Of a stretch of 64,000 nt of DNA, positions 2,186-62,090 are shown piece by piece; positions within the stretch are counted from its first letter, which is position 1, and every line of letters starts with the position of its first letter. The notes beneath the pieces were generated by a model, which had not been told where the DNA came from, did no database searches, and saw only the letters and a list, made by a program, of their open reading frames with translations. The translations under genes were made by a program, and so were the position numbers. The DNA is from Blastocladiella emersonii ATCC 22665 (Eukaryota > Fungi > Blastocladiomycota). The stretch spans positions 868,001 through 932,000 of the forward strand of contig JANHCV010000014.1 in assembly GCA_025594325.1 (NCBI GenBank). The letters are read 5' to 3'.

Positions 2186-4534
2186 TTAACTGTGCAGCTC
2201 GGCCTCCTCAAGCAGCTTGGCCACGGCCGCGGAGCTCGATTTGAGAGCGTCCGACGGCGGGAAGATCCGCATAAGTGCGCGAGCATGATCATCGTTGCCG
2301 TCGGCAACGGCCGCAAGGGTGAGCGAATCGCTCACTGTCGGATCAAGGCCGGGGTTGAGCTGAGTCGGATCGTCCGCCACCTTGAGCAACGCTGTGACGA
2401 CCCACGGAAGGGAAAACATGCTGGAAGGGAATTCACGAATAACCAGCGCAACGTTGTGCTCGACCATGATGAGGAACAGTCGCAACCGAAGGCGGTCAAC
2501 GTTGCGGGAGGTGAGGCTGGGATCAAACGAGAAGCGATAAATTGAGCAGGCGCTGAGCGTGAGCGCGACTGTTTCTGGATAGCGCTGGAGAAGACAATCG
2601 AGAACTAGAAGCACGGCATTGTCCAGCGTCTCTTGGTTGATGTCGAGATCGAGATCATTGTCAGTACAAATGGACTGAAGGACTCTTGTACCAAGAGAGT
2701 GAACCAACGCTCCTCGCAAACTAGCCATGTGCGTGTCGTTCCCGCCCAAGAGATCAGGCAGCTCTGCAACCGTAATGGAAGAGTCACCACAGCCAACTGC
2801 GCAGCACAACAGGAATAAAAAGCGGGACACGCGTTGGTAGTTGTGGTGAGGGCTCCTGCCGCTGAGCGCTGTGGGAAGCCACTCCAGGGTCCGGCGGACA
2901 ACGTAGCGTGGGTCAAGTCCTGAATTGGACTCTGAGAGGAAAAAGTCAAAGGTAGATGGGTGCGTGGCAAAGTAGCCCAGTTGCGAGTCAAACAGCTCTT
3001 GGGGCTGAGGCAAGTTGTCAAACAGCGAGCAGAAGTGGAACAACTCAGCAAGATGGAATTGTTCAGGTGGTTTCCGCCCTTGAGGCTCACAACGTGTCGT
3101 AATCGTCGGGTACACTAGACGACAACGATTTGGGCAGAGTGTTTTTGTCAGTTTGATACAGTGAAGGGAGAAGGCAGAAGTACGTTTTGACGCACCATTA
3201 GTCATGACCTGAGCAAGCTTGCCAGGAGACACATGCGCTTTGAGATATTCAGCAATGAGCAGCATGAGCTCCGGATTAGCGAGCGACTCACGCACAAGCT
3301 CTGGCCAGAAATCGGGATTCTTGTCAAGCGCACCGATTTCAATGAAGCGGGGGATTAAGTCATGGTGACCCCTCCCAAACCAGTGGGCAAGCCGTTTCCG
3401 AAGTTCCGGGCCGAATACACCCTCCATACAATCAGCTGCGTCGTAGCGCTCAAAGAGTTCGCAGAATAGCATGTAGCCTGGCTCGCAGTTCTTGCACGAG
3501 TAGCAGGCTATGGCTGATTCTGTGGGATTGTCCAACACCCAGCCGTTGTCAGTGAGCCAGTCTAGGAAAGGAAGGACGTGGTTGAGGTCACCAGTGCAGC
3601 AAGGGCCGCGATGGCTAATGGTGCAAAGGAATAAGCAGGTCACAAAATAATCTGAGAGCCACGCCATAAATAGGGCGCGGTCAACGCCGTAATGGCGGTC
3701 AACAATCCCTTGGATGGCCGTACGATCCCACAGCGTCGCTGCGACCAATGCAAGTGCCATCGCATAGGTGATTGGCTGAGCGGTGTCTTCATCGTCATCG
3801 TCATCCTCATGTCGAAACTCATGCACTGGATAACATAGGTATAACTCATCACGCAAGCCTTTGTCTTCTGTGAGCCACAAGCGCGACCAAGTCGCAAGTT
3901 GAGCCCGATCAGTGAGCAAGCTTGGGAAGAGCGCCACAAGATGGTCCATGCACGCAAACATGGATTCAAGATCACCCGCGTGCAAGAAGAAGAAAGGCAA
4001 CGAAAGCCCTTCTGGAACGGCACGGAAACCAAAAGAGTGGTGAAGCGCATCAGAACCGACAGGAACGTCGGAAAACGGGGTCAAGGCATCAAGAATGGAG
4101 GTGGGAAGCGGCTGGTTCCGGCGGTAAATGTATGCAAGAATCGGTTTCGAAAACGGGTGCACAAAGTCGACTGGAGCGCCACGGCGGTTGGCGGGCAAGG
4201 AGGCATGGTCCTGCACGCACAGAAGACTCGGAAAGTGCAGCTTAAGGTACCACACAAACGGCATCTGAAGCTGACGAGTTCCGGGGTTTTTCCAATCGTG
4301 CTTGAGACCTTCGGCTCGGGCTGCAGCATATTGCTTGTAAGTAGTGCTCATAATCTTGCGCGCAACCCAGGCGCGCTCGGCTGGCGACCTAGCGGCGAAA
4401 GCACAGCGCATGGCGCTCGAAGAAGCGACCACAAGTGCGCGCGGTTCGGCAAGAGCGACAACTTGTTCAAGGATGTCAAAAGGCAAGTCAGGCCCTCTGT
4501 CGGAGGGCCCCTGGTCATGTTGCATCAGCTTCAT
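2186..4534 (-). CDS. Hypothetical 782-aa protein with MKLMQ leader and F-box-like N-terminus (divergent singleton)
   Basis: Uninterrupted ORF. N-terminus DLPFDILEQVVALAEPR matches the LPxxLLxxVLQLAxPR start of the local family. Also has an acidic tract HEDDDDDEDT and CYSCKNC. Upstream ATCATGTGAC motif at 4661-4670 (minus strand). Confidence 0.75.
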   Translation of the reverse strand: MKLMQHDQGPSDRGPDLPFDILEQVVALAEPRALVVASSSAMRCAFAARSPAERAWVARKIMSTTYKQYAAARAEGLKHDWKNPGTRQLQMPFVWYLKLHFPSLLCVQDHASLPANRRGAPVDFVHPFSKPILAYIYRRNQPLPTSILDALTPFSDVPVGSDALHHSFGFRAVPEGLSLPFFFLHAGDLESMFACMDHLVALFPSLLTDRAQLATWSRLWLTEDKGLRDELYLCYPVHEFRHEDDDDDEDTAQPITYAMALALVAATLWDRTAIQGIVDRHYGVDRALFMAWLSDYFVTCLFLCTISHRGPCCTGDLNHVLPFLDWLTDNGWVLDNPTESAIACYSCKNCEPGYMLFCELFERYDAADCMEGVFGPELRKRLAHWFGRGHHDLIPRFIEIGALDKNPDFWPELVRESLANPELMLLIAEYLKAHVSPGKLAQVMTNGASKRTSAFSLHCIKLTKTLCPNRCRLVYPTITTRCEPQGRKPPEQFHLAELFHFCSLFDNLPQPQELFDSQLGYFATHPSTFDFFLSESNSGLDPRYVVRRTLEWLPTALSGRSPHHNYQRVSRFLFLLCCAVGCGDSSITVAELPDLLGGNDTHMASLRGALVHSLGTRVLQSICTDNDLDLDINQETLDNAVLLVLDCLLQRYPETVALTLSACSIYRFSFDPSLTSRNVDRLRLRLFLIMVEHNVALVIREFPSSMFSLPWVVTALLKVADDPTQLNPGLDPTVSDSLTLAAVADGNDDHARALMRIFPPSDALKSSSAAVAKLLEEAELHS

Positions 4535-13799: not shown

Positions 13800-16261
13800 A
13801 TGAAGCCAATGAATAAATCACAACTTAACTCGATGCAACCTCTCGCGGATAACGACAGCACTATATCTATGGCGTCTCTCACGGAAACTGCGGACTGCGA
13901 CGAAGCGCACCTCGCGAGGCTGCCCGACGCACTCGTCACCCTGGTGCTCCAGCTCGCGCAGCCCCGCTCGACGCCTTGTACCGCATCTCGCCTTCTCGTT
14001 ACCTCGGCTCGCGAGCTCTCAATCTACCGCATCTGGGCGCCCGTGGTGCTTCGCCGCCACATCCACCCGGTCCTGCGTGGCGAGTACAAGGTGGCTCGCA
14101 ACACGCGCATCTTCAACGAGCTTGCGTTCATCGTCGACCAAGTCTTCTATAACCGGCTACTCGAGAACCGCGTCAACGACGTCGGTAACCCGGATGCGCA
14201 GCTTCTCCTTGCGCTCATGAAGGGTTTCCTGTACGACCAGCGCCAGCACGCGCGCCGGACCGCTGCGACCTTCGACAAGCAGTTGAAGTGGGCGGTCAAC
14301 GAGTGCTTTTATACTTCCCCAAACGCGGTTGCCGAGCTTGCAAAGCTCCGGCCAGACTATGCCACTCACGCTCACCTCGTCGCGCCTTACCTGATCCTTG
14401 GCGCCGCCGTGCTCATGGACGATGCCGACTTGCTTGAGACCCTGCTCGTCGCTGTCCAACAAGAGCTCCCCGCCGTTTTCGACGTGCGCATGCTGCCAAC
14501 GGCTTGGTGGTGCTTGACGATGCAGGGCGAGCTTTCCCTGGCCGGCTACGGTTCGATTGCGCAAATGGACCCCGAGCTCGAGCGCAGTCTGAAGCCAGCC
14601 CCGCTTCTGGAGCATCTCCTTCTGCTCTCAGCCGTTCTTTGGCGGCCCAACGCTTTCCGCGTGCTCAAGGACCAGCGCTTCGAACTCAGCATTGATTTGT
14701 TGCCGCATGTCTTTGGCAACAACACGATCGCGCCGTTCGCGATTGCGACCCTCACCAAGCAGACTCTCACGCCCAAGGAACTTATGCCCATCGTCGACTG
14801 GCAGCTTCGCACGCGCACGTCCGAGCCGCTCATCACGGCTAGCGGGGCCCACATCATCCATTACCTTCTCGACCCGCTGCCTCGGGATTACATTGGCTAT
14901 GCCGCCCAGCACTTTCCCGCCAGCCTCACCGACAGGCTGGGACCGCGCAATTTCGACGTGATCCGATCCCAGATTATGAAGTGGACCGTTGACGACTTGG
15001 ATCCAGAATTCGTTGCTCTGCTTGACAGTCTCGGTTTGCTCCAAACTGCGGCATGGAAACACCTGCTTTTCAAGGGCCTGTCCGAGGACAACGGGACTGG
15101 TGCCGGCAGCCTGTCAGCGTTTGTGGCGAAGCAACTTGGGCCGCGCCTCCAAGGAGTCCTCGTCGAGGGTACGTTACGTTTGAATGTGACCACCGAACCC
15201 GCCAGATCTCACACAGCTCGTTACGGTAGCATTCAGCACCAGCCTTCTGCTTGCCCACGAGTGCAGCCGTAGCACGGCTAACATCCTGTCTTACGGATGC
15301 TGCCACCTTGATCGCGATCAGTTCGAGGCCACGCTTTCCGACTTTGCGACTGCTCTTCGGAAAGCTCTTTTTATCATGCAGTGCGAGATCAAAGGCCCGA
15401 TTGCTCGCTCGTGCTCTATCTTGCAAGCTTTGAGCCGGATCTTTGGCTCCACAGAGGAGCGCCGGCTGAGCCTGTGGCTCCTCTTCCATCTCGCCAACGA
15501 GTTTCTTGCTATTGCCCGTAAGCCGCGGGTCCAGGACCTGTACAGCATTGCGTGGCTTCCGGCCATCGTTCTCAGTGACCCAGTGACCCGCGACGCCGCT
15601 CTCGCCCAAATCCGCGCCAAGCGCACCACCACCGCGCGTCATCATGCTCAACGGTCTCATCAGCACCAACGTCAAGACGCTCTACTCGCTGCGCGACGAC
15701 GGCGATTCCATGCCCTCAAAGCCCGAGGAGACGCCACACTGCACGCTTGAGGTGCACGCGTCATGGTCCTCGGCCATGGCTGACCTGCACCAGCTGATTC
15801 GCAAAGGCACGGCCTCGACCAACACGGCCATCGTGTGGTTCCCGTCCAACTATGCGCGCACCATCCGTGCGATCGTGCAGGACAAGTCGCATGGTGGACT
15901 TCGCGGCCGCTGCGACAGTGAGCTTGCCCAGAACCCAAACGGCGCCTGCTCGCGGTGCGGCGCCGCGATCGTTCCGCGCGTCGAGAAAGCGCTTCGGTTC
16001 TTGCTTTGCACTGAGCCCGCGGCCGCGCTCGCTGATCTTGGGCCCAACGTCGCGCTCCCGCTCGACTTTTGGGCGCTCGTACCCAGCGGCGGGCTCGACG
16101 GCGTCAAGGACTCCAAGTGGGTCTCGGACATGGCCCGCAGCGCAATCCGCGAGTACGACGTGGGGACCGCGCTGGCCGTGATTCACAAACTTCGCCGCGT
16201 TGCGCCAGTGGCGACCACGAGTTCTGCTGAGTTTCTCGTCGCGACTTTCAAGCTTCTTTGA
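13800..16261 (+). pseudogene. Family copy P1 (F-box-like + novel two-exon family), frameshifted
   Basis: Exon 1 13800-15168, intron 15169-15229 (GTACGT..TAG), exon 2 to 16261. A ~11-nt deletion near 15637 (TTAR-[xFLx]-IMLN in paralogs) shifts the frame. It could also be an assembly indel. Confidence 0.8.
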
Positions 16262-16426
16262 TCAAGCGATGCCCGGGGTGCTTGCGAGAGGCCGCTGAGA
16301 ACGAGCCGCTTGGGCGGGAATATATATACAGTCGAACGCGTCGGGTGAGTGACTCGGATGACACGCGTGGTGAGAGCTATGAGACACGCGAGTCGCTCGC
16401 TCTCCCATAGAGGACACGCAACAACC

Positions 16427-18887
16427 ATGAATCGAATGGATTCGCATCACGACTCTATGCAATCTGTTACTGGCACTGCTGCGGACCATGTTGACCGCGC
16501 GCCTGCGGCTCCATCAGTGGGAACCTCGGATGGACTCGTGGAGCTCGCGGTGCTTGCCGACCCCGTCCTTACGTTGGTCTTACAGCTGTCACGCCCGAGC
16601 TCTGCTGTTTGCGCTGCATCGCGCCTCTTTGTCGCCTTGGCTTGTGACCCGCGACTCGTTCGCATCTGGGCGCCCGTGGTGCTCCGCCGTTTTCTGAATC
16701 CGCGACTGCACGCTCGGTTCTTGCAAAAGCTGAGCGATGTGCATTTACCACGAGTTATTCTACCTCCTCAACCAGGACGGCTTCAACTCGACGCTTGGGC
16801 CTCTCGTTCGTGAACTAGCGAGTCCGGACGCGCAGCTCATGCGCGCGCTCATGACTGGCTTCCTCTTTGACCAGGGCATGCTCGCGCGCAAGCACCCATT
16901 GACCATGGAGAAGCAGTCGGCTTGGGCGCTGTCTGGGATCATTTACGCGTTGGCCGATCCGGCGGGCGACTTGGCCAGAAAGCGACCAAACTATCTCGCA
17001 CTCTCATTTGGCCGCGCCGTTTCTCATTCTCAAGGCCGTTGTGCACATGGACGACGCCGACCTGCTCACGGACCTGTTGGACGCCGTGCAGCGCGACCTC
17101 CCCAGCGTCCTCAAGATGAGCCTTCCGCCGTCGCAGTGGTTCGGCCTCACTTTGGCGGGCGAGATCGAGCTTATGAAGTCCGGCCTGCTGTCGTTTCTGA
17201 CTCCTGAATTCGAGCGCAGACTCGTTCCTAACTCACTGCTCGGATATTTGTGCCTACTTTCGGCCGTGATGTGGCGTCCCAACTCGTTTCGCGTGCTCAG
17301 CGGCCCGCGCTTCCGCATCGACATGAAGCGGCTGGCCCACACTTTCGGAATCAACACGGTCGCGCCTTTGGCACTCTCGGCGCTCCCCGGCCAAACCCTT
17401 TCTGACCCGCCCGCCGAGTACATGCCGATTTTTGACTGGCTGCTGCGTGAGCGCAAGCCCGGCTGCATGTGGTCTCCGCGGAGAATCCATCTGATCAACT
17501 AACTTCTTGCCTCAGCCCCGCGCGACTTTGTACGGTACGCTGCACAGCACCACCCGACGTGTCTCAACGAGGGGATGGAGCCGGGCGACTTGGCGGTGAT
17601 CCGCTCCAGAATCAAGGAGTGGAAGTACGAGGAACTCGATACGGACTTCATTGCCCTTCTCGATGGCTTCGATCTCTTGAGCACGGGCTCGTGGGCGGCT
17701 ATTCTTTCGATTAGTCTGGTTGAGGATGGGGGCACGGGTACCAGCGACGTCTCGGTGTTTGTGGTCGCTCATCTTTGGTCGCGGCTCACACCGGTTCTCG
17801 TGGAAGGTACGCGTGTCGTGGGATGGCTAAAACTCAGCCGTTGACAATACTTGCGCGCTTGCCCCGCGTAGCCTTGCGTATTCATGTCGCTACCAAGCTC
17901 GATAATGGACGCAGCACGACCTCTGTTCTGGCATACGCGCACCGCCAGCTTGGGCATGCGCAGTTTGAGGCTGCGCTCCCTGACTTTGCGGACGCGCTGC
18001 ATAACGCCCTTTCATTTATGCGGTTGCTAGCGGGCAACCCTCAAGCGTTTTCGCAACTTCTCATGCGAACAGTCAGTCGTCTCTTTAGTTGCACCGACGA
18101 GCGCCAGCTTAGCTCGTGGCTTCTATTCCGCTTCGCCAATGAGTTCCTCGCCGTTGTTCGCACAATCGATCTTCGTGACCTTCACGACTTGGGGTGGATC
18201 TTTGTTGTTTGCCTCGGCGATCCCGCGACACGCGAGGGCGCGCTCGCCCAAATTTGCGCCAAAGGCACCAACAAGGCGCGGCGGTTCCTTCATGTGGTTC
18301 TCTGTGGTCTTCTCGAACAGTCTCACAAGTTGCTGTACTCGCCGAACCCGCGCGAGAAGACGGACCGCTGCACGCTCGAGGCACACTCATCATGGACCGC
18401 CGCCATGTACGATTTGCACCGGTTGATCCGCAAGAGCACGGACTCGGTTGACAGCGCTGCAGTCTGGTTTTCGCCGGACATGGCGGACACTGTCCGTGCG
18501 CTTGTGCTGCGCAGAAGTCGCGGCGGTCTCCGCTATCGCTTCGAGGAGGGGCTCGCCGAGGACCCAACCGCAACGTGCTCGCGGTGCGTCGCGGCAGTTC
18601 TCCCGCGGGTTCAGCAAGCGCTCCAATTCTTGCTTTGCGTCGAGCCTGCTGCGACACTCAAGATTTTTGAACCTGATCCGGCGCTCCCGCTCGAATTTTG
18701 GCAACTCGTTCCTGACGGCGCGCTCGATGGCGTCAGGGATGTCGAGTGGGTCAGGAGAATGATTCTCAGCACCAACCGCGATCTTGGCACGACCACGGCG
18801 CGCGTAGTGCTCCGCGAGATTCGACGCTCTGTGCCGAGGGCGGCGACGGGGCCGTTTGAGTCGCTGTTTGCGTCGCTCAAGGTCTAG
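16427..18887 (+). pseudogene. Family copy P2, two frameshifts plus premature TAA
   Basis: Frameshifts near 16735 and 17005. In-frame TAA at 17500-17502 where P8 has TAT (INYLL). Intron 17807-17871. Exon 2 is intact to TAG at 18887. Confidence 0.85.
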
Positions 18888-19174
18888 TGAATGAGCGGCG
18901 CGGGTGGGTAGCGTGGTTGTGATCACCGAGTTTGCGTCAAGGTTTCCAGAGTGTATAATTTTCTGCTTGACGCTGGGTACCTTGAACAAGGCCGTGCGAT
19001 CGCTAGGACGGGTGACAGGTGAGTGCGAAATGAGGCGGGAGGGAAACCGCAGCCAGCCTCGAGTGCCATCAACCTCGAAGATTGGGGCGAAAGCTAACGT
19101 GTCTTCAACTCCCAGTTCATAGCTAATTTGGAGTCTTGCACCGCGAAAGCGCTTCGTGAGACATGAGATGCGAG

Positions 19175-19196
19175 ACGCGTCAATCAATCATGTGAC
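19175..19196 (+). promoter_or_regulatory. Composite ACGCGT (MCB-like) plus ATCATGTGAC (E/M-box-like) element, P3 copy
   Basis: ACGCGTcaatcaATCATGTGAC. Near-identical arrangements occur before P4, the 32307 gene, P8, P9 and P12. Confidence 0.55.
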
Positions 19197-19485
19197 ATGC
19201 ACGTGAGATGACCGACGCGTTGAACGATCGGCACGACCGCTACGTTGCAGCTCGGCTCACTCTCACACGGCTCTGAAAGTGGCGAAAACTTGTGCAAGGT
19301 GTGCTGGGAGCTTCATCTCGCAAATCTGTTGCCGTGGGAAATGGAGCTACCACAGCTCGCGGTGGGAACTGGCGCAATTTTGCGCGCCCCAGCGCAGTTG
19401 CGCTGCGCCCGCAATCTCAAGCTCACCCCCCATTTCTCGGCGCCGAGGCTCGCCCTCTCTCTCTCCAGACGATGCTCAAACAACC

Positions 19486-20905
19486 ATGAATCCGATGGAA
19501 ACACATCACGACTTGGTGCAACGCGATGCGAACAGTGCCTCGAGGCATGATGCCAGCTTGGGCGTCCCCGCCGTCACGTCGTTCAGTTTGCTTCCCGACG
19601 AGGTTGTGACCATGATCTTGCAGCAGGCGCAGCCGCGTTCGGTCACCTGTGCTTCAGCCCGCATTTTGCTCCCCGCCGCACGGGACCCTTCAATTTATCG
19701 CCATTGGCCGCCCGTGGTGCTTCGCCGTTACATCAACCCGCAGCTCACGGCATCTCTTGAGCAACTTCCTTTGGGCTGGGCCCACTCTGATATTGGTATC
19801 GTGGCCTGTCAGTCGGATTGGAATCGGTGCTTGGACTCGCCGCACGCTGGGATCACGGAACCGGACTCGCACGTCCTCTATGTGCTCATGCATGGGTTGA
19901 TCTACGACATCCGTGCCTATGCGAAGCTGCACTCGGAGATATTCCCAAAGGCATTGGAATGGGCCCTTTGTGCTCATGTACAGGGACCAGATGGCGAGTA
20001 CGCCAGGAACCCACCACACTATGCAGTGCATCCGCACCTTGTTTCTCTCCTGATCATCCTTGCCAAAGCCGTGTACATGGACGACACTCACTTACTCGGG
20101 GCGCTGATTGACGCCGCCGAACGAAGCATCCCCGCTCTGTATATTTCCACTTTCCCGCGCCTTTGTGGTGGGTGTTGACGTTTCAGGGTCAGCTATCTTT
20201 TTTCCGACTTCGTTTGACCGCAGAAATGATTGGTTCCATTTTTTGGGTCCCGCTCCTTGGGCAGCTACTGCTTCACACGGCCGTCTCTTGGAGCACCAAG
20301 TTCTTTTACGTTTTCAGCGACCTACGATTCGGCCTTGACGTGTTCTGCCTTCCCCATACGCTCGGCGACAACGTGATTTTGTTCCTCGCGATCAACGAAC
20401 TCGTTGAGCATAAACATCGGCCGTATGTCGAGCTCTTGCCGATCCTTGACTGGCTGTTTCGGGCGCGGAGACCGGGACCAATGCGCACGCCTAACGGAAC
20501 TCATCTTGCAGTTCTCCTAATAGGTCGAGTGCCTTGGGGTTGCTTCGCCTACGTCGCGAATCGGTTCCCAACTTGCCTTACCAAGGGCCTCGAGAAGGAG
20601 GACTTGAACGAAATCTCCTTTGAGGTCCAGACGTGGGACCTCATGGACGAAAATGCCTTTCGCCTCGCCCTGCTGGACAAGTTTGGCTTTCTTGACAACA
20701 CGGCCTGGGGTCACGTCATCTTGTGCGGCCTCGTCCAAGATGAGGGGACTGGCGATGGTGCGCTCTCGCTGTACGCAGCAAGCCGACTTGGACTTGACTT
20801 TGAATATGTGTTCGCCGAAGGTGCGTCAAATGTGACTAGCATCTAATCCCGATCGGCACTTCAACTAACTGGTTGTCTTGAATAGCTCGTCAGCGCGACT
20901 CTTGA
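19486..20905 (+). pseudogene. Family copy P3, frameshifted and missing exon 2
   Basis: Frameshift near 20162. Conserved donor at 20821 and acceptor at 20885, followed by TGA after 6 codons and unrelated sequence. Confidence 0.8.
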
Positions 20906-21218
20906 GTAGCACACTGAGCTCAGCAGCAGATGGCCCTTTCCTTAGGTAAGAATCTTAAGAAAAGTGAGGGGGAGCTGCCTGGGCGCAGCGCTGCCACCGC
21001 GGCGCGTGCGGCGGAGCAAGGCGGAGAAAGGCCGCCCATATCCTTTGAGGTGCCTAGCGTGCGCAGCGGCGGTCGCGCGCGTGAATTGTGCGAGGCGGCG
21101 CGGCCTGAAACGCCCGCGGGCTGGCGCGGCGGCAGCTTGACGCGACTTCGGGCGCCCTGCTCCTTCACGTCACGATGACGCAACACGGCCCGCTTGCCCA
21201 GGGTCCTTCGCCGGTCCT

Positions 21219-22020: not shown

Positions 22021-22334
22021 GACCGACCTAATCTCGCGCGCGCGCGAGCTGGCGGCGGGATCGCCCGCTCGCGGCACCGGATGGCGGCGTTGCCAAGGGC
22101 TAAGAAAAATAAGAACTTCTTCCTGTTCAAAAAGTGCCTGCTTTTGCCTGTGTTCTCGCTCTAAGAAATGCGCGGTTTGCTGCTGTGGAGCCGGTGGGCG
22201 GGGACGGCGATTCGTTGAGTTTGTGTCTGGTTCCGTGAAGTCCGTAGGGATATTCTCTTCGTGTTCCTTCAAGCTTTGTGCTAGGAAGGCAGGGTGCGAC
22301 CTCCGTGCCGGACAGGGGATCGACGCGGGGAAAG

Positions 22335-22366
22335 ACGCGACAATCAATCATGTGACGGCGACGCGT
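22335..22366 (+). promoter_or_regulatory. Composite element, P4 copy
   Basis: ACGCGAcaatcaATCATGTGACggcgACGCGT, about 70-100 bp before the ATG at 22435. Confidence 0.55.
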
Positions 22367-22434
22367 CGTCAAGCCACTACGCTTCTCACGGCGCGCGTTC
22401 GGCTCGCCCTCTCCGTCGACCCACCCCTGCAGCC

Positions 22435-35330: not shown

Positions 35331-35408
35331 GGACTGCTGCGATCAGTTCTTCGCGGACTAGATGGGCTCCACACGACAGCACAGGATAAAGTCGTAGAGC
35401 GAGAGCGA

Positions 35409-44504: not shown

Positions 44505-46957
44505 ATGAATCGAATGGACTCCCGTCATAACTCGCTGCAAACTGCCACAGAGGAGGCCGAAATCCCGTCGGTGGCACCGGCCGCGGAACCTGGTGTTGTC
44601 GTTGCACCCGTCACGGCGCTGCCGGACGCCATCTTGACGCTGGTCTTACAGCTTGCGCGGCCGCGCTCAATCTTGTGTGTTGCTTCTCGTTGCATCATTG
44701 GACCCGCCTGCGAGCCTTCGATCAACCGGATTTGGGCGCCGATCGTGCTCCGCCGCTCCTTCCGCCCGCAGCTCGCTGACTTGTACAAGCAAAATTCGCG
44801 CGGACTGCGCGTGTTTCACGAGCTTACGTTTCTGCTCAGCCAGACATACTTTAACTCGACGCTCAAATCACCGCTCCCAGGCGTCCTTGGTCCAGATGCG
44901 CAGCTTATGCGCGCGCTGATGACCGGGTTCCTCTTCGACCAGCGCCAGTACGCGCGCAAGCACGCTTCGACCCTCAGACGCGAGACGGCTTGGGCGTTAG
45001 CGGATATTTTCTATTCCTCAGTGGATCCGGTTGGCGACCTTGCCAGAGCGCGGTCGAACCAGGTCCTGCACCCGCATCTTGCTGCGCCGTACCTTCTACT
45101 CTGTGCCGCTGTGCACATGGACGATGCCGACCTGCTCACTGACTTGCTCGCCGCTGTTGAGCGAGACCTTCCTAGCGTTTTGAAGCGAGCCCTGCCGCCG
45201 TCGAAATGGTTCGCCTTAACACTGGAGGGTGAGCTCGAGCTCAGCAATTCCTGCATTCTTGCGGTTTTAGGCGACGCCCATGATAACAAACTTCAACCCA
45301 CTTCGCTGCTCGAGCACATGTGCTTGCTCTCGGCTGTCATGTGGTGTCCCAACTCGTTCCGCGTGCTCATCGACCCGCGCTTCCGCATCGACATGATGGG
45401 GCTAGCGCATGCATTTGGCGAAAACACGGTCGCGCCTTTTGCGCTCGCGACCCTTCCCAAACAAGACTTTTCGCGCCCAGCTGCCAATTACATACCAATC
45501 TTGGACTGGCTGCTGCGCAAGCGCAGACCCGGCCGCATGTGGTCGCCCGCCTGACTCCATCTCATCAACTATCTGCTTGCGCCGATCCCGCGTGACTTTG
45601 TACGTTTTGTCGCGGAGCACCACCCGGCCTGTCTCGCCGAAGGCATCGAGGAAAATGGTTTGCGAAACGTCCGACTTCAGGTCAGAGAGTGGAAGTACGA
45701 GCACCTCGATGCGGAGCTGCTCGCTCTCCTCGACAAGCACGGTGTGTTTAACGAAGGTACGTGGGCGGAAATTCTCTTGAAGGGCCTGGCGGAGGACGAC
45801 AGCACGGGTACCAGCGATCTCTCAGTATTTGTGGCCGAGCATCTTGAGTCACGGCTTGCTCTTGTACTCGTCGAAGGTATGCGCGTAGCTCGAGTGCTCC
45901 AGTCGACCTGTGGTGACATATTCTCGCTCCTCTTGTAGCATTCCGAGTAAGTGTTCTCGGCATTTACGAGGGTGGCCGCAGCGCGACCAACATCCTGGTC
46001 CACGCTTACCGTCAGCTTGGGCGCGAGCAGTTTGAAGCCGCGCTTCCCGACTTTGCGGCAGCACTGCAGGGCGACTTTGCCGTCATGGAGGAGGCGGCAG
46101 AAAATCAGCTCTCGGTCTCGCGGTTTATTGTGCTGACTCTAAACTGCATATTTGGGTGCAGCGAGCAACGTCGACTCAGCCCGTGGCTCCTGTTCTGCTT
46201 GGCCAACGAATTTCTCGCTGTCGCTCGTTCGCCAAACATGCATGATTTGCACGTTCTGGCTTGGCTCCCTGCCATTGTTCTCAACGACCCGAATATGCGT
46301 GACGCGGCGCTTCAGCAGGTCCGCGCCAAGGGTTCGACCACGGCGCGCATGTTTCTCTCTATCCTGCTCAACCATATCGTTGGCAGCCATACCAAGACGC
46401 TGTACTCGCCAACTCCGCGTGAGGAATCGCAGCGCTGCACGCTCGAGGTCCACGCTTCCTGGACAGCTGCCATGACTGAACTTCACCGGCTGATCCGCGA
46501 GGTCATGGGCTCGGCCTACACGCCGACCGGGTGGTTCCCTCCGGACCGTGCGGGATCTGTTCGAATTATTGCGCAGGCCAAGGGCCGCAGCGGGCTGCAG
46601 GGCCGCACTGACGACGAGCTCGCCGAGTACCCAAACGGCGTCTGTCCGCGGTGCCGCGTCCCGGTCGTTCCGCGCCTGAAGCAGGCGTTCCGGTTTCTGT
46701 TTCGTGCCGAGCCCGCGGCATCGCTTGCCGAGCTTGGACCCGACACGGTGCTCCCGCTCGACTTCTGGGAACTTGTGCCCGATGGCGCGCTGGACGGCGT
46801 CAAGGACGCCAAGTGGCTCATGAAGATGGCGCGGAGCACCAAGCATCAGCTCGACGCGGACACAGCGCGCGCGGTCTTCTGTGAACTCCGTCATGTTGCT
46901 CCGGTGACCACGGCCGGTGCGGTTGAGTCGCTGTTCGTCTCGCTCGAGCTGCAGTGA
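44505..46957 (+). pseudogene. Family copy P8, single premature TGA
   Basis: TGA at 45552-45554 where most paralogs have Gly. Intron 45877-45938. The rest is in frame. Confidence 0.85.
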
Positions 46958-47221: not shown

Positions 47222-49652
47222 ATGAAACGAATGAAAGACCACACCGAGTTGATGCAAGCTTCTCTCGGGCATGCTGAAAGCGCTGACCTACCGTCCGCAG
47301 CACCCTCGGCGGAACCCAACGACTGCGCCGCACTATTCGCGGCGCTTCCCGACACTCCTGTCACATACATTCTCCAGCTCTCGCGGCCTCGCTCGAGATA
47401 TTGCAGCGCTTCGCAGTGTCTATTCGAAGCAGCACGCACACTTGCAATGAACAGGGTTTGGGCGCCGGTCGTGCTCTGCCGTTACATAAATCCTGTGCTT
47501 TTCGCCGAGTACCTGGCCTCGCGCGATTCAATCTTCTTTTATGAAGCTGAGTTCGTGCTTGAACAGCCATTCTTCAATAGCTTGCGCTCGTCTCCCATCG
47601 ATGGGATTGCGTATCCTGACCCTTTGCTTCTCATCGCGCTCATGGAGGGTTTCATGTACGACCAGCGAAGTTACTCGCAAACACACCCTGTGGCCTTCGA
47701 GAAGGCTTGGACCTGGGCCCTGCCAGTGCGTCTTTTGAAGCCAAACGACCCAGCCGTCAAGTTAAACATGCCTCAGCCAATCGATGCCACGTACATGGCT
47801 GCACCATACCTCATTCTTGGCGCAGCCGTGGTCATGGACGACGCCAAACTCCTCGAGACTTTGTTTGCTGTCGTCGAGCGCGACCTGCTCCTGGTCCTCA
47901 CTGTGGGCGCTTGTCCGACAGCCTGGTGGGGATAACCTTGCACGGCGAGCACTACCTGGCCAAGCACGGCGCGAACACACAAGTGCGCTTGGACCCTGCG
48001 AGTATTCAGAATCAAGCATCGTTTCTCGAACATCTCCTCCTGCTTGCAGTCGTCACTTGGCAACCCAACTCCTTCCGCTTTCTCAAGGACGCGCGTTGTG
48101 GATTCGACATGCAGTTGCTTCCGCACACGTTCGGCGACAACTCCATCTTGAGTTCCGTGATTGCGGCTCTCGTATTACAAAATCGCCCGCCCGCCGAGCT
48201 TATGCCGATCTTCGACTGGCTATTGAGCACTAGAAAGCCAGGTCCGTTGCTTACCACCCGTGGCCTTCCCATCATTTGCTACTTGTTTGATCATTCGCGG
48301 GTGCCAAGCGCATTCTTGCGCTACGCGTCGAGGCTCTACCCGAGCGTCCTCGCCGATGGATTGTCGCCTCGCATTGTGGAAAAGCTCAGAAAGCATGCGA
48401 TTCGTTTGACGTTCACCAAGCCCGGCATTGATCTTGTCGCCTCGCTCGACGATCTAGGACTGCTCGACACGGCGACTTCGACTTGGGCACGGATCCTTTT
48501 CTTGGAGATGACAAAGGATGAGACGAGTGAGTTCTCTTCGTTTATTGTTGCACAGCTTGGGCCTCGCCTAAGATTCGCACTCGTTGAAGGTACGCGCGAG
48601 CTGAGCGCCGTGCCAGCAATTAGTCTCCGCGGTTGCTTACCCCACGAATAACTGTAGCTTTCCGTGAGGGCGTTCTTTACGCTGAAGTTGACGGCCGCAG
48701 CGTCAAATGCATGCTTCTTCGCGGCTATCGTCGGCTTGAACAACACCACTTTGAAGCCGTAATCCCCGACTTGGCGGCTGCGTTGCGAGACGCTCTCGAT
48801 TACTTCAAAGAGCGTGTGAAGAGCAAGCGAGCTAATTCGTACCTGGCGAATCGAATGCTGGGGCACATATTTGGATGTGGGGAGCAACACCGGCTCCCCC
48901 CGTGGCCCTTGTTCTTATTCGCCAACGAATTCCTTGCCATCCTTCACAACCCTCACATCTTTGACCTGTCTAGCTTGGCATGGCTCCCTGCCATTGTCTT
49001 GAACGACCCTTGTACGCACGATGCCGCTCTCGAACAGATCCGAGCAAAGGGTACAGCAACTGCTCGCCTGTTTCTTGCCATCATATTCAACCGCCACCTT
49101 GTCATCCGCGGCAAAGCAATCCTTGCACCGGCCCCAAACGCGAGGACCGCCCGTTGCTCACCAGTGCCCGACGGTTCTTGGACGGTGGCCATGCTGGAAC
49201 TGCAGCAGTTGCTGTTTGAAAACACGGGCTTGCCCGTTGCGTGCTTTCCTTCCGACTCCACTTGTCGCGCAATCGTCGCCACGCAAGGCAAAGATTGTTC
49301 CAGTCCTTTCGAGTCGAGGTTGGCCCAGTGCCTGATTGAGGCCTGCCTGCGGTGCTCCGAAATCTTCATCCCGCACGACCAGGCGTTCCAACCCTTGCTC
49401 TGGACCGGGCCTGTTGCTATGTTCGCGGAATTTGGTTACAAGACGGCGCTCCCTCTCGATTTCTGGGAGCTCGTGCCAGACGGTGCACTTGAAGACGTCG
49501 CGGACACCAAGTGGGTCACGCAAATGTCGCGGGTGCTGCGTGATTTTGACACAGAGTTGGCGCGTGCAGTCTTTCGAGAACTCCACCATGTCGCACCCTT
49601 GAAGACAAGCCGACTGGCTGAGTTTCTAATGATTACGCTCGAGCTCGATTAA
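47222..49652 (+). pseudogene. Family copy P9, single 1-nt frameshift
   Basis: WWG then taaccttg at about 47933, lacking one base relative to WWGLTxxG. Intron 48590-48657. Exon 2 is intact to TAA at 49652. Confidence 0.8.
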
Positions 49653-51001
49653 TGAACGGCTCTTGGCTTCTGGCTGCAGTTGATTGTGCGGTTGTTATCG
49701 TAGTTGTTGCGCCAATCAGGTAGTTGCGCAATCCGCAAGCTGTTGCTTGACAACGGGGCAGCGTGTGCACATTTCCAAGATTCAAGGACGTCCGCACCTA
49801 ACAACAAATTGCATATTTATTCCCGCTCGCTACGTTGACGGGCTCCGTCGCTCGCGCTTCTCATGAACGCTAATTTCCGACACTGCGCGCTCAAACACGG
49901 GAAGACTCTTGCGCGCCCGCGAGATCCGTTTCAGCTCGTCGAGATGACAAACCTCCATCCCAGGCGCGCCAGCGATGCGACGCACGTCCGCATCCTGGAG
50001 CACATTGACAAGGGCGTCGTCGGGAATCCATTCCGTGAGGGCTGGGGCGACTGGCGAAAGTGCGTCAATCAGATCGGCCAACAGCCGCTGCATTTTACTT
50101 TGCAACTTGGCCACAATCAAACGAGTCGTGCCGGTGCCAGTGGGAGCGCAGCATGTGTTGGCGAGCTCGTAATCGTGCGCATACTCGTGGTTCGGTTTCG
50201 GCGCGGCAAGGTAGACGGCGAGCGATTGGGACAGGTCAGTCTCGGGGCTCACAAGCGCGAGGAGCGAGACGAAAGCGTTGCGCCACGGGGTTTGATACGA
50301 GAGCGGGCAGTCAGGACAGGTCATGAAGCCGGGGGGAAGGGTTGGGAAGATAGGGTCCCTGTCGGACGAAAGATGCGCAGCGAGCATCGCGCACAGCAGT
50401 TGGCCAGCAGTGCCCAAGCCACGAATGACCTCGAGGGCGCGACCTTTGGTCCCCTCAACTGCCAGAACCGAGGTTGTCAGCCACGAAAGCGCGTGAGAAG
50501 CTATGATCGTTGGAAAACTGTCCATCTTGGTGGGAAGCAGTCGCGTGACGATTGCTAGGACATCGAGTCGGGCGGCCGTCGGCTTGTCCACGTCAAGCAG
50601 TGCAACGATGGCCCCGAAGCGCCGGCCCGGATTGGGATCTTTGAATTTGAGCGCCTCAGCCGCAAAACGCTCGGTAAACTTTGCATGGCCCGCTGCAAGC
50701 GCTAACGCAAGCAAACAATCAAGGATGCGGCCGCTGATTGAGGGTTCGTTGTAGGCGGCTGAGAATGCTGTAAAATGTGCAATAGGTGAGTGGTTGGCTA
50801 GGTTTATCCACAGGGAGACAAGCAAAAGGAACGTACCTTTCTCAAGTACCGCCTCCCAAGTAGCTTCCCGAGGGGTCATGGCGGTGCAAAGTGAACCAAC
50901 CACGTCATCTTGCTGTTCAAGCAAGGCACGGCAAAGCAGCTTGGCAAAGTAGTCGTGTCCAAAAAATGCAAACGGATACGTCATCGGGAAATTGGGGGTT
51001 A

Positions 51002-51291
51002 AGATCTCGAAGAGATCTAGCTAGATCTTTCATAGATCTTAGGGTTTCGGGGGCCAAAATAGCCGGGGAAGATCTAGGTAGAAATCCACTGCAAACCTAT
51101 GTTTTCTATAGATCTCACCATAGATCTATCCCTCCCGTCCAGCCGAGCTCGACTCCGTCAGGGCCGATAGATCTTTGCAACGAACGTAGATTCCCCGCCG
51201 CTGAGGAGACCTGTGAGATTTTCAAGCGATCTTCGCCAAGCGAGAGATCTCAGCACACAACGGGAGAGTTCGATGAGTGAGAAACAGATCT
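51002..51291. repeat. Left subterminal AGATCT array
   Basis: Ten perfect AGATCT at 51002, 51013, 51023, 51034, 51070, 51110, 51122, 51169, 51245 and 51286, plus variants. Confidence 0.92.
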
Positions 51292-53271: not shown

Positions 53272-53450
53272 TCCTAGATTTGTGGTCGAACACCATAGAT
53301 TACTCGTAGATCTATGTCGGGAGCCAAGATCTTCGCGAGCGGAACCACTCCGGACTGGTCGAGCGGGGCTAGATTTCCGCAGGGCTAAGATCTTCGTAGA
53401 TCACAGTGATCTAGGAAGATCTTCGTGATCCACCGCAGCGGGGTGATCCC
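53272..53450. repeat. Right subterminal AGATCT array
   Basis: Perfect AGATCT at 53308, 53327, 53388 and 53417, plus AGATT, AGATCA and TGATC variants. Confidence 0.88.
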
Positions 53451-54667
53451 CCATTTCCCGATGGTAGTCGACTCGATATCGCGGTATGTTATACGGCGCC
53501 CATTGTCATCGACCAACAGGCTTTTCTTGACCATCCAATCAACTTCGGTTCTGCCCCAGGCGTCCAAGTCCGCGCCAACCTGGGTGGGCGCGCGGGCCAT
53601 AATGAGAGGAAGTGCAAACGGTACGTGCTCAATGAGCAGATCAAGGGCCGTCTTCTCCCCCACAAACGTATTGGACCAGCCGTGCTTGTAGAGTAGCGCC
53701 ATGATGCCGGCCACGCGCTTGTACGATGGAGCCCGATCGCACATTCCATAATACACCGGGACGGCGGTAACCTCGTCCTCCAGTGCGCCAATAAGCTCCT
53801 TCGTGTTGACGCCATACTGCGGGTTCAACAACAGCTCGAACGTCTCGTCCTGCCAGTAGTTCACAGCAAGGAAAGCCAAGACATCCATCAGGCGGAGTTC
53901 AAACTGGGAGTTTTCGAAGGGGTCGGGATGCTCGTAGTCAAAGGGAAGCACCGAGTCGCTTAACATCTTGGCCCACTCGGACCACAGGAGAGCGAGTTCA
54001 AGCAGCTCTGGCCAGTAAGCTTGGATATCGTCGAGTACCTGCTGAAGGAGAAGGGGGGAGCCGGTCATGGTTGCATGTGTCGCGACGATCAGGTGAACGG
54101 CAAGCGGGTTCTGGAAGAGTTGTCCCGGCAAGGCAAGCTGAGCGACTTCGACAAGCTCAATGACATGAAAGCCGGACTCCTCGGCGGCATCGGGCAGCAA
54201 TGTGCGACGCTGCGCCTCGGCTCGGCGCCTGGCACACGGAATGAGGGCATGCATCAGCGGAACGGTGCGAGAGTAGCTGGCGGCGAGTGTCGAGGCAGTC
54301 CGAGCCTCATCTCGCGGATTAGGGTAGTGGCGAGTATCTGGGATTTGAAGTAAAGTTGAGACACATTCCAGAGCACCCTCGGATGACTGGGAAGCGAGAC
54401 GGGAGATGATCCATGCAGGGAGTGCGAGCGGATCGGACGCAAAGCGATGCATAGCTTTCGAGGCGAGGACGACCGTCACGCGCGGTCGTGCGAGCTGGAC
54501 CACAGCAAGCACGAGATCGGTTGGAAGATTTCCAAAGCGGAGCGCCCGCATCGTTCCCGGTGAAGGTGGCCGAGTAGATTGCATAGTCATTCATTGGTGT
54601 CACCTCCATTTGCTTCATGACAGCGTCTGCAACGGGAGAGCGAAGCGCGTCGTGGCGTCTTCCTCCC

Positions 54668-57722: not shown

Positions 57723-59588
57723 ATGGAAGCAACGAAAGGCTCTATGCAACTTGCGCCTATGACCCTCGAGACACTGCCGATCGACGTTGAGCGAGCGGTC
57801 GCGCGATAATTGTCACTCGGTGACGCGCCTGCCGTCCGCGCTTGCAGCCGCGCCCTCGCATCTTCTCAACCGTGGCAAGGCCGCGCCGAGTGCCGCATGC
57901 TGTTTGCGCTCGCAGCAGGCGACCAAGCTACTTTTATGAACCTCGCACCTCCGTACTATGGCCCTCGGGTCCGCCGAACCAAGCCGAAGTCCGGATCGCA
58001 CTCAAACAAGCACCAGCAACCCCGCGAGCTTGTTGCCCGCTTTCTGGAAACCATGGTCCGCCGCGACGTTGGTCCGGGACCCGCGTAGAAAATCTTGCGT
58101 ATTTATTGCCACGGAAAGCTTCCCCTCGACCTAGCTCTCTACGTCAAGCTCCACCAGATTGCGATCGAACGGCGCGCACTCAACGCCTTGGCGGCGCTCG
58201 TGACGCTCAAGAACCGCAACGGCAAGAACCGTCACAATACGTACTTTGTGTACTGCGACGCAGCAAAGGACCCCATTCCGCATTGCTTGGCCATTCTCGA
58301 CAACGTTGACGTTGACGTTGCGCCCGACGTCGCCGCCCCGCTTGTGCGCGCGACCATCTTTACCGCCTGGCGGTACCAAAAAACTTAAACTTTTTATCCC
58401 AAATTCTCGACGTGCTCACACGCTGCCGCGCGCGCTTTGATGAAAATGTCGCCGCAGTTTGTTCTTGAGCTCTTGCCTGATGCGCCGCGCCAAGAGCAGC
58501 TGCACGCCGACGATCCCAAGTGGTGCCCCTGGTCCTTTTTTCTCGCCTTCATCCGCGAATCGCACCGTGGTGGCGGAGCTCTGGCCAATGCACGGCTGCT
58601 TGCTGATCTCACCATTCTTGCCGACCACGCTGGCTACCGCGGCAGCGAAACGAACTTCCTCCGCATCGACTACGTTGACGGCGTTGAGCGTGTCCTCAAT
58701 CGCGTGCACGCGCTGCTTCCTGCTTCGTCCAAGGTCCACGCAGCGTCGCCTGCCAAGCTCAACAACCTTCTCCGGCTCATTGGCAAACATGTCATTGGCT
58801 GGAATCTCCACCGCAGTGCGTGGCTTACGATCTCAAGGCTTCCAAGTGTACACCACGGCTTTGTCGAGGAGCTCATTGAACAGCTTCGATGGTGGTGGCC
58901 GCACCAGGCTGCGCTGGAATCCATCCTTGAATCAATCTTCCAGTGGGGCCATTCACCCCGCTTTGATGCGTCGTTCGTGGTCGAGCTGGCGCAATGCGTT
59001 CCGCTTATTCTGTGCCATCGCCACCTCGTACTTCCAGCAGCATACGATTGCACCGAGGACCCTTTTACTTGGACGCTGCGAACCGAGCCGTACACGGACG
59101 CTGAGTGGCGCGATCTTTACGCCGCAACCGTCGCAGCAGCGCACGAAATTTGGCGCGCGTACTTGGCTTCGCTTGAGGACTTGGTAGGCCGGTGGAAGCT
59201 GCTTATGCGGCCGTGCAAGTGCGGGATTCTTTAATCGTTGATTGATCTTGATTACCCTGGTGCGCCGTTGCCGGGGACCAACGAGCCACTTGATGCTGCG
59301 CCGCTTGGCGTCAACGGACTCGGGCTGCAAATGGTCACGGTCGCCGAGGTGTATCTCAGTGAACCGGGACGAGTGGAAGCGTTTGCCAAGGGCGTGAACA
59401 CCTTGCGCGGGCAGCCATGGCGCCTCTCGCTGCAGTTTGTTGATCTGCTGCTCGCGGCGGAGTGGGCCCCGAAGCGCAAGGACTCGATTTTCAAATTCAT
59501 TCAGCTGGCAAGGGCTGACGGTCGCATCTCGGATGAGCCGTGGATCAAGGTCAAGAACTGGTACAATTCCTCGGTGTCGCGCGAGTGA
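57723..59588 (+). pseudogene. F-box-like gene with four in-frame TAA/TAG and no frameshift
   Basis: One frame from ATG 57723 to TGA 59586-59588, interrupted at 57807 (TAA), 58086 (TAG), 58386 (TAA) and 59232 (TAA). N-terminus LETLPIDVERAVAR*LSLGDAPAVRACSR is F-box-like. Confidence 0.75.
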
Positions 59589-59815: not shown

Positions 59816-62090
59816 ATGAATCGAATGAATAACCTTCGCGACTCGGTGCAATCTGCTCCCAGCGGCGCCGGCGACGTGGATGTGCCGTCCGTTGCACCCT
59901 CGGCGGAACCCGACGAGCGCGACGCTCGCTTCGCAGCGCTTCCCGACACGCTCATCTTGTTGGTTCTACACCTTGCACAGCCTCGCTCAATTTCCTGCGT
60001 CGCTTCGCGCTGCCTCGTTGGGCCTGCACGCGAGCTCTCAATCAGGTCTCCTTTGCCAAAACAATCGAGTTTGCCTTGGCCGGGCCTCGCGCTCCTGATG
60101 CCAGCTACCTTGTCGCGCTCATGAAGGGCTTCTTGTTTGACCAGCGCCAATATGAACGCCGGGACTCGACAACGTTTACGCAAGAGTCGAAATGGTCGTT
60201 GCATTACTACCATTGCACGTGTCCCACCCCGATTGGCGACCTCGCCAAACTGCGACACGTTTACGCGTCGCATGCCCACCTCGCCGCGCCCTACCTCATC
60301 CTTGCCGCCGCTGTGCTCATGGATGACGCGAGCTTGCTCGAGCAGCTGTTGAATGCCGTGCAGCAGCATGTCCCGGCTGTTCTCGCCATGAAAATGCAGC
60401 CCATGGAATGGTGGCATCTGACCTGGCACGGGCTCATGTTCCTGTGCAAGTCGAAACTCCACACGGTTGTGGGCGAGGAGCCCGAGAACAAGTTGCCGCC
60501 GATGCCCTTCCTCGATCACTTGCTCCTTCTCTCCGCCGTCGCGTGGCGAAGCGACTCCTTTCGCATCCTCAGCGCGTCGCGTTTCGGAGCTGACCTCAAG
60601 GCGCTCCAGCATGCCTTTGGCGATAACGTGCTCGGGTTTTTTGCGATCAGAGCTCTGAATAACCAGACTCGCCCATCCGAAGAGCTCATGCCTATCTTCG
60701 ATTGGCTTCTCAGCACGCGCAAGCCTGTTCCGGCTCAAATCGTCAGCGTAGTGCACATCGCGATCATCTTGATTTATTCGGCCTTGCGCAACTTTCTTTC
60801 TATATCATGCCGTGCATCGGTACCCGGCCTGCCTTACTGACGGCCTGGATCCGACCGATCTGCATCTGATCGCGTTCCAAGTCCGCACATGGACGTTAGC
60901 AGACATGAATACCAACTTGATCGGGCTTGTGGATGACTTGGGTCTGCTCAGCTCTCTTTCGTGGACGAACATTGTCTTCGCCGGGCTGGACCAGGACAAT
61001 GAGACCGGTTCTGGGGAGCTTTCTCAGTTTGCGTTCAAACAGCTCACGTCGGGTTCACGGATTTCGGCGGTGCTGGCCAAGGGTACGTAACCGTCCGCTC
61101 CCACGCACGATCTTGAAAAACCTCCGGGATTGCAGTGTTCCGTGATACCCTGCTCTCAGCTGACACGGATAGCTGCGATGCGATGCACATTTTGCTGCTC
61201 AGCTCTCGCGAGCTCGGGTGCGAGCAGTTTGAATCTGCGCTTGCAAAGTTTGCAGCTGCGCTTGCCGAGGCCCTGATTGTCGTTCAGGTGGAACTAACCG
61301 TCCCTTCAGCATACTCGCAGTTGGTTTCGGCGACACTAGGTCACCTGTTTACGTGTGGCGAGGAGAAGCTACTCAGCCCCTGGCTCCTGTTCCGACTTGC
61401 AAACGAGTACCTTGGCGTTGCTCCTGCACCGCGTCTCCAGGAATCCCACGCCATGGCATGGCTGCCTGTTGTCGTACTTGCCGATCCGGCCACACGCGAC
61501 GCCGCGCTCGCGCAAACCCGCGCCAAGGGTGCAGTCACGGCACGCCGGTTCCTTTTCATCACGCTCAACCGCCTTCTCGGCCGTTAAGCGATAACCCTCT
61601 ACTCGCCGACCCCGCGCGAAGAGACGAATTGCTGTGCTCTCGAATTTCATCCATCATGGGCTGCTGCCGTGTCGGACTTGCACCAGATTATTCAATTGAG
61701 CACGGACTCGGCTGGCCCGTGGCTCTCTAGCGACTGCTCCGACTTGATCCGCCGCATCATTGAACGAGAATTTGCGCAGGGTGGGCTTGGCTTCAGATTC
61801 AACCAGGAGCTGGCCGATTTCCCGAACGGGACGTGTCCGAGATGTGGCGAGCAGATGTTCCCGCGCCTCGAACAGGCGCTCCGGTTTCTTTTCCGTGCCG
61901 AGCCTGCCCTTGCTCTCGCGAAGCTCGGTTCCGAGCAAGCGCTTCCGCTCGATTTCTGCGAACTCGTTCCCGACGGTGCCCTCGACAGTATAAAGGACGC
62001 CAAATGGGTCGAGGACATGGCTAACAGCGCCAAGCACGAGTTCGATGCAGAGACGGCGCGTGTCGTCGTCCGCGAGCTCCAGCGCGTCGC
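59816..62090 (+). pseudogene. Family copy P12: deletion, frameshifts, TAA, and an LTR insertion at the 3' end
   Basis: About 38 codons missing after ELSI (~60044). Frameshift near 60790. Intron 61083-61135. TAA at 61585. Family similarity stops at ELQRVA (62090), where TGTAAGGG begins. Confidence 0.85.

Follow-up and report, generated by a model that had tools for sequence, protein, structure and literature searches.

Introduction

Plants and Caenorhabditis possess hundreds of F-box genes, in which the F-box is combined with FBA, Kelch or leucine-rich repeat (LRR) domains or with FTH/DUF38, and these genes evolve by birth and death. The large and fast-evolving F-box families of plants and nematodes have been linked to conflict with pathogens. 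Cullin ligases, for their part, can recruit substrates through receptors with ankyrin repeats, of which ASB9, ASB7 and FEM1B are examples. Here we describe a stretch of 64,000 nucleotides from the genome of Blastocladiella emersonii ATCC 22665, a saprotrophic water fungus that is early-diverging and zoosporic and that serves as a model for phototaxis and optogenetics. The whole stretch, called the window below, covers positions 868001-932000 of contig C6 (JANHCV010000014.1) in a 21-contig, 32.65-Mb assembly, and has a GC content of about 60%. Between positions 2186 and 62163 of the window we found about 20 genes or relics, close to the 19 or so counted in an earlier note on this DNA: ten copies of a family named here P, the genes S1 to S3, three ankyrin-repeat genes (A1 to A3), one LRR gene, and relics of the P exon 2 and of an L-type start. 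On balance, we favor the reading that these genes belong to a lineage-specific repertoire of putative substrate receptors of Skp1-cullin-F-box (SCF) ubiquitin ligases, evolving by birth and death.

As in the plant and Caenorhabditis expansions, an N-terminal F-box-type motif is followed by variable repeats, and there are hundreds of tandem copies as well as pseudogenes. The differences concern the box, which is too diverged for Pfam and has a core of its own (QLAxPRS), the main body of the P family, which is encoded in two exons and belongs to no named family, the presence of a fixed in-frame nucleotide element in the leader, and the host, an early-diverging zoosporic fungus. The LRR gene and its approximately 150-330 paralogs are comparable to the FBXL proteins (Skp2, TIR1, Grr1) in carrying RNI-type LRRs (LRR_6) behind an N-terminal box; unlike in FBXL, two A-like ankyrin repeats are placed between the box and the LRRs, and the F-box identity of the box is putative. 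The combination of an ankyrin solenoid with a short adaptor-docking motif recalls the ASB (SOCS box), FEM1 and poxvirus ANK/PRANC proteins, and fold and sequence searches with the Blastocladiella families led, among others, to ASB9, ASB7 and FEM1B. However, the docking-type motif is here N-terminal and F-box-like, and not a C-terminal SOCS or PRANC box. We found nothing comparable in the literature for a zoosporic fungus.

The P family and its box

The all-against-all comparison of the six-frame open reading frames (ORFs) of the window revealed, besides the dominant P family, a smaller one of three members and a PIF1-helicase element present in duplicate. Spliced genes were treated exon by exon, and the P alignments are per exon or of full-length members only; broken genes were kept as found. 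A P copy consists of an exon 1 of about 445 codons and an exon 2 of about 330 codons. They are separated by a phase-1 intron of 53-68 nt, located at the same position in the seven copies (7/7) that could be checked, which bears out the two-exon module described in the earlier note. Neighboring copies are 27-41% identical to each other. P4, P5 and P9 are apparently intact, while frame changes were observed in P1, P2, P3, P7 and P10 and in-frame stops in P2, P6 and P10; P3 is without exon 2, and P8 is interrupted by an inserted element. The ten copies, two exon-2 fragments and two related genes are the following:

P1, 13800-16261, forward strand: exon 1 at 13800-15168, intron at 15169-15229, frame change in exon 2 at about 15.65-15.7 kb.
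P2, 16427-18887, forward strand: broken; exon 1 changes frame twice, and an in-frame stop lies at 17500-17502; intron at 17807-17871.
P3, 19486-20846, forward strand: exon 1 alone, frame change at about 20.12-20.16 kb.
P4, 22435-24833, forward strand: intact reference copy; exon 1 at 22435-23770, intron at 23771-23838, exon 2 at 23839-24833.
P5, 41687-44133, forward strand: apparently intact; intron at 43056-43111.
P6, 44505-46957, forward strand: stop at 45552-45554, intron at 45877-45938, leader with CTGCAA instead of ATGCAA.
P7, 47222-49652, forward strand: frame change in exon 1 at about 47.93-48.0 kb; intron at 48590-48657.
P8, 49830-54590, reverse strand: exon 1 at 53385-54590 and exon-2 domain at 49830-51020, with the inserted element between them; hidden Markov model (HMM) of the box E=2.4e-18, HMM of exon 2 E=8.9e-27.
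P9, 55161-57578, reverse strand: intact, intronless ORF of 805 aa with box, body and C-terminal domain.
P10, 59816-62163, forward strand: broken, with frame changes in exon 1 and a stop at 61585-61587.
P exon-2 relic, 27987-28370, forward strand: first third of the domain, exon-2 HMM E=1.9e-27.
P exon-2-like fragment, 30996-31958, reverse strand: without a matching exon 1, exon-2 HMM E=1.3e-19.
S1, 2186-4534, reverse strand: intact ORF of 782 aa, leader MKLMQ, P-type box.
S2, 32307-33894, forward strand: strong P-type box, divergent body.

The annotated protein KAI9152629 (745 aa) has the same N-terminal sequence as P1, from an internal Met on, and the paralogs of P9 at loci L046 and L057 are 37-39% identical to it. 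The exon-2 domain is recognized by the motif LPLDFWxLVPDGALD and by Cys pairs (23839-24833 in the window; residues 480-800, approximately, of P9), and sequence searches of Pfam and the PDB with it gave no match. This domain was also found as relics lacking exon 1, and it is absent or unrecognizable in S1 and S2.

The N-terminal box common to 12 genes of the window has the form LPxELxxxVLQLAxPRSxxxxASRxL...W. When a profile of this P-type box, built from 37 loci sampled genome-wide and 11 window copies, was run against 618 ORF segments of the window, it found exactly those 12 genes, with E-values from 3e-13 to 2e-24; among the same segments it did not match A1-A3, the LRR gene or S3, the gene at 57723 (E>10). 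Thus, the single 5' cassette that the earlier note had placed on at least four different modules gives way to three or more types of box, every one of them coupled to a body of its own, and to a pseudogene with a canonical F-box. Nor can the genes at 4534 (S1), 32307 (S2) and 57723 (S3) be kept as the unrelated singletons they had been called. The P-only box profile finds both S1 and S2, which therefore carry a P-type box, and S3 has a canonical F-box. S1 matches the box HMM at E=3e-13 and, at E=1.5e-11, a box-free HMM of the exon-1 body built without S1; as judged from sequence, it is a divergent member of the P superfamily. Its C-terminal part of about 300 aa has no recognized domain, and locus L049 holds a paralog that agrees with it in type and length. 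S2 gives a strong match to the box HMM (E=2.6e-23) and a weak one to the P body HMM (E=0.002), and its subfamily can be followed through the genome by the leader MExxExTxCN.. and the motif ATSGFA..TQWVWRCT (paralogs L033-L038, L054, L067 and L070).

To compare the P-type box with the F-box we used a reference alignment of 24 F-boxes from this genome, each of which exceeds the PF12937 cut-off. The two profiles were aligned by hhalign with a probability of 92.4% (P=5.1e-7) over 49 columns, in which the LP pairs coincide, as do the distal W residues. The score, 32.9, lies far above the controls, since 150 column shuffles reached at most 13.4 and the reversed profile 6.7. With the alignment of window copies only, the probability was 72% (P=3.4e-5). 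In a six-frame scan of 80 loci, an HMM of the canonical F-boxes of this genome gave E-values of 2e-4 to 0.05 at the correct position for many P boxes, and of 0.004-0.07, also at the correct position, for some A boxes. The neighbors of residues 28-95 of P4 in a language-model embedding (Atlas) were all F-box clusters (top score 0.91), a result to be taken as a lead only. The AlphaFold2 model of P4 exon 1, made from a 42-row alignment, has a pLDDT of 87.3 and a pTM of 0.85, and presents short helices at residues 37-46, 51-56, 58-64 and 67-79 followed by an all-helical solenoid. Taken together, the P-type box is probably F-box-like, and it is the best supported of the box types.

No sequence match was obtained for the P exon-1 body in profile searches of Pfam and the PDB. 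Among the matches to its predicted fold, the best are almost entirely ANK proteins, though with Z of 6-8 over 200-270 residues and rmsd of 5-7 Å, ASB9, ASB7 and FEM1B being included. The P family adds an architecture that is confidently folded and unnamed.

The ankyrin and LRR families

The other members of the group and their relics are located as follows:

LRR gene, 25129-27192, forward strand: behind the leader and the L-type box (AIPEIIDRILVAA) come two ankyrin-like repeats of the A type, then LRR_6 repeats and finally an acidic tail of Ser/Asp.
A1, 27444-27910, forward strand: ankyrin-family relic with box, stop at 27600-27602 and then, in another frame, a fragment that by eye resembles the C-terminal repeats of A2.
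A2, 37071-38255, forward strand: intact gene of 394 aa with leader, A-type box and ankyrin repeats.
A3, 40314-41486, forward strand: member of the ankyrin family interrupted by a single in-frame TGA (40845-40847).
L-type start relic, 35978-36037, forward strand: 19 codons (MQDSMQRKVWLAIYSLASL*), carrying the 12-nt element described below.

Pfam did not detect ankyrin repeats in A2 alone. The profile of the A family, however, found Ankyrin-1 in the PDB (E=3e-11) together with many other ANK chains, and the paralogs L079 and L082 pass Pfam Ank_4. A1-A3, ankyrin-like in the earlier description, can accordingly be classed as true ankyrin-repeat genes. The AlphaFold2 model of A2 (pLDDT 86.5) presents helices at residues 18-31, 38-42 and 49-58 ahead of the repeats. 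A2 is 99% identical to the annotated H9P43_009427, and this annotated copy was its sole match in the word-index search. The gene at 25129 was also rightly recognized as an LRR gene, as it matches LRR_6 at E=2.7e-19 (68 bits, above the Pfam cut-off) and its paralogs L091 and L102 pass too. Word-index protein searches with P9 and with the N-terminus of the LRR gene came back empty.

Within the conserved N-terminal 130 residues of the LRR gene there are two repeats homologous to the ankyrins of the A family (98.1%, E=1.3e-13, 57 columns), and the first helix of the L-type box aligns with that of the A-type box (90.9%, 16 columns). By sequence comparison, then, the A and LRR families are mosaics in which a box and two shared ankyrin repeats are continued either by more ankyrins or by LRRs, and the pair constitutes the only clear case of modular reuse. 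We also considered P and A as a single family, given that both have ANK-like folds. This idea was discarded, because the whole profiles align over the leader and the first helix only (P=0.0036); the A-type and P-type boxes themselves align in the first helix only, with a probability of 8%, and the L-type box likewise resembles the P-type box in that helix alone, below significance.

The canonical F-box pseudogene

S3 differs from the genes described above in the nature of its box:

S3, 57723-59588, forward strand: pseudogene interrupted by four in-frame stops; its family has about 12 members and a canonical F-box.

With its stop read as X, the start of S3 scores 20.7 bits against the F-box HMM of the same genome, and the intact paralogs pass PF12937. 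The S3 family has the same kind of leader as the other members.

Genome-wide scale and distribution

The copy count across the genome that the earlier note had proposed was made, as candidate loci, for the three families. The mixed N-terminal (P-type) profile gave 489 candidate loci, and the 150 that were scored were all significant (150/150) and came from at least 12 contigs. With A2 as query there were 240 candidate loci (at least 138 matches), and with the N-terminal 150 residues of the LRR gene 329 candidate loci (at least 150 matches). The three families would thus amount to several hundred to about 1000 loci, whereas the annotation of the genome counts 10,031 genes. In a sample of 40 box-bearing loci, at least 25 have a P exon-2-like domain about 1.85-2.65 kb downstream, which indicates that box and body types travel together and are not shuffled. 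Of the shuffling claimed before, therefore, only the A/LRR pair with its two shared ankyrin repeats is left.

The claim of lineage specificity is supported. An exhaustive profile search with seven full-length members against 1.84 billion representatives found 60 proteins at E<=0.001. Twenty of the 60 were looked up, and 17 of these are hypothetical proteins of B. emersonii (one of them mis-named) and three are from Catenaria anguillulae. The Catenaria relatives are weak matches without a Pfam domain, and they keep the box LPxELxxxVxxLAxPRS. This supports the view that the three families are almost restricted to one lineage, the Blastocladiales. In the publication of the B. emersonii genome, families of F-box, ankyrin or LRR proteins go unmentioned, and gene duplication is said to be low (PMC9730499). 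Our literature search found no other paper that links Blastocladiella with F-boxes in substance.

The families are concentrated on contigs of middle size (C2, C4, C5, C6, C11 and C16-C21), with few copies on C1 and C3, which are the largest, a distribution that suggests compartmentalized "accessory" islands. Duplication at a larger scale was also observed around the window. Positions 32300-60100 (C6:900.3-928.1 kb) have a near-identical inverted copy at C6:731.0-767.6 kb, about 133 kb away and spanning 28-36 kb. In it P5, P6, P8, P9, P10, S2 and A3 have the same scores as in the window, and the identity is 99% for A2 and 100% for a piece of S3. Either a true segmental duplication in inverted orientation or an error of assembly could explain this copy. 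The P1-P4/LRR part of the window (13800-27192) has a second, direct copy at C6:674-693 kb, about 210 kb upstream, in which the N-terminus of the LRR gene is 100% identical (C6:682374-682823) and the P copies are diverged.

From P1 to A2 the public annotation seems, by locus tags, to hold no more than about three genes (H9P43_009425 to 009427), even though both P4 and the LRR gene appear intact; the count assumes 009427 to be the A2 of the window rather than the copy that is 99% identical to it. Among the annotated members of B. emersonii, many are fragmented or started at an internal Met, and most copies of the window seem to be missing from the public annotation or fragmented in it.

The leader and the 12-nt element

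Nearly all members start with a leader of the type M-[NKDE]-x(3-9)-[SLT]-[MLV]-[QH], as had been noticed before. At the DNA level the leader reads (N)AC-TYS-ATG-CAA, and M..SMQ is encoded by the 12-nt element AACTYSATGCAA. The genome contains 384 exact copies of AACTYSATGCAA, whereas the reversed sequence, used as control, has 2. In the window a relaxed form occurs 7 times, against 0.5 expected (13828, 19511, 27463, 35987, 37090, 41715 and 59841). The Gln codon of the leader is CAA in 32 cases and CAG in 1, whereas the bodies use 248 CAA and 415 CAG, and the VLQLA motif of the box 2 CAA and 27 CAG (Fisher p=1.5e-12). Since this bias towards CAA is present in the leader Gln codon and not in bodies or box, the constraint on the leader acts on the nucleotides. 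The TGCAA core is kept even where ATG is changed to GTG or CTG. In most family genes there is also a CT-rich GCTCTCC box about 45-60 nt upstream.

The element is not particular to these families. Canonical F-box genes also carry it, and none of 20 sampled sites of the 12-mer on contig C1 is followed by a box. There, the 12-mer lies amid upstream ATGs, from a few to about 60 nt before the ATG of another ORF, or in short frames resembling upstream ORFs, and it sometimes directly precedes GGTAAA. The leader M..SMQ was consequently dropped as a family-specific peptide, given that the 12-mer is also found ahead of unrelated C1 ORFs. We found nothing in the literature on this element, which may act as a promoter, as an initiator or in translational control. 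This in-frame element offers a handle on gene regulation in this model organism. Signal peptide-like starts were not seen, in agreement with the earlier note.

Proposed function and alternative explanations

The window appears as one of many gene-family islands, made of tandemly duplicated, fast-diverging and often decaying copies of three families. Each protein would consist of a short leader and a three-helix, F-box-like motif of about 50 residues, which is predicted, as the most likely role, to dock on the Skp1 of an SCF ubiquitin ligase. The repeat domain behind the box would then choose the substrate. In P proteins this part would be an ankyrin-like helical solenoid with a Cys-containing C-terminal domain, in A proteins ankyrin repeats, and in LRR proteins two ankyrins with LRRs; changing targets would drive the diversification. 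Further points in favor are the three Skp1 loci of the genome (C15:2012492-2012704, C1:792512-792658 and C1:3199651-3199794) and the presence, in the window itself, of S3, a pseudogene from a Pfam-positive F-box family.

Several observations weigh against this proposal. The HMMER check with PF00646 and PF12937 suggested in the earlier note failed to recover F-boxes, as 16 N-termini had no Pfam F-box match at E<=10 (hmmscan), and none of the 70 PF12937 matches of the genome (0/70) lies inside the window. The sequence profile search of the PDB yielded FBXW7 alone, at E=0.35. In the structural searches, Foldseek and VIA-align recovered no F-box chain, although the small N-terminal motif was not searchable separately. 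The P model had no Foldseek match at E<0.1 (the A2 matches range from E 0.005 to 0.05), and values of Z of 6-8, coming from a helical repeat, make the ankyrin-like fold of the P model suggestive without being decisive. The A-type box aligns with the F-box in the first helix only (28.7%, 19 columns), and the comparison of the L-type box with the F-box was not significant. F-box-like N-termini, assumed before for all members, were thus upheld for the P type, the similarity of A and L being confined to the first helix. Moreover, the three Skp1 loci would have to serve hundreds of putative partners, and the heavy pseudogenization suggests that many copies do nothing.

A first alternative denies the N-terminal box any F-box function and sees in it a family-specific helical cap or another interaction motif, in proteins placed outside the ubiquitin system, for example scaffolds or binders. 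The failure of the Pfam F-box models with every P, A and L member speaks for it, as do the restriction of the A and L similarity to one helix, the lack of any solved F-box protein in the Foldseek and VIA-align results, and the invariant QLAxPRS core of the P box, which lies outside the canonical F-box consensus. Nevertheless, such a cap would have to account for an hhalign alignment of 49 columns that includes the distal W and is far above shuffles, for subthreshold HMM matches placed correctly in dozens of members, and for Atlas neighbors that are uniformly F-box (those of the first 135 residues of the LRR gene were also all F-box clusters, top score 0.84, again a lead only). In addition, SCF receptors have the same layout, in which the box stands at the N-terminus and LRR or ANK repeats come after it. 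We consider this alternative rather doubtful, and the same holds for its corollary that the resemblance comes from distant ancestry or from convergence on an LP plus an amphipathic helix.

Improbable, in our opinion, is a second alternative, in which the families consist for the most part of selfish DNA without function, amplified in repeat-rich islands, that decays after segmental and tandem duplication and keeps its 5' end for duplication or transcription only: at least half of the family copies in the window contain stops, frame changes or insertions, they are interspersed with PIF1-helicase ORFs, the inverted copy is near-identical over 28-36 kb at a distance of about 133 kb and few copies are annotated, but ORFs as long as 780-840 aa have stayed intact although their identity is down to 20-40%, and they have kept their motifs, their intron phase and confident folds, a pattern that requires many copies to be under purifying selection, and the relatives in Catenaria indicate that the family is old.

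The reading as putative SCF substrate receptors can be extended, although we regard the extension as speculative and unlikely to hold in full. A hypervariable set of several hundred SCF-type receptors would share the 12-nt AACTYSATGCAA 5' element with the mRNAs of other genes, the element would be a transcriptional or translational switch (responding, for instance, to life stage or stress), and the receptors would form a recognition system driven by conflict.

Other features of the window

The window also encodes housekeeping genes, namely a chitin synthase (CHS4 and cytochrome-b5 domains) and CLPTM1. Two sets of ORFs on the reverse strand are related to each other:

28956-30794, reverse strand: ORFs with a PIF1-like helicase/AAA domain (Pfam PIF1 E=1e-20).
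34052-35342, reverse strand: homologous ORF set, located amid family relics.

These related PIF1-like sets may represent a Helitron-type element.

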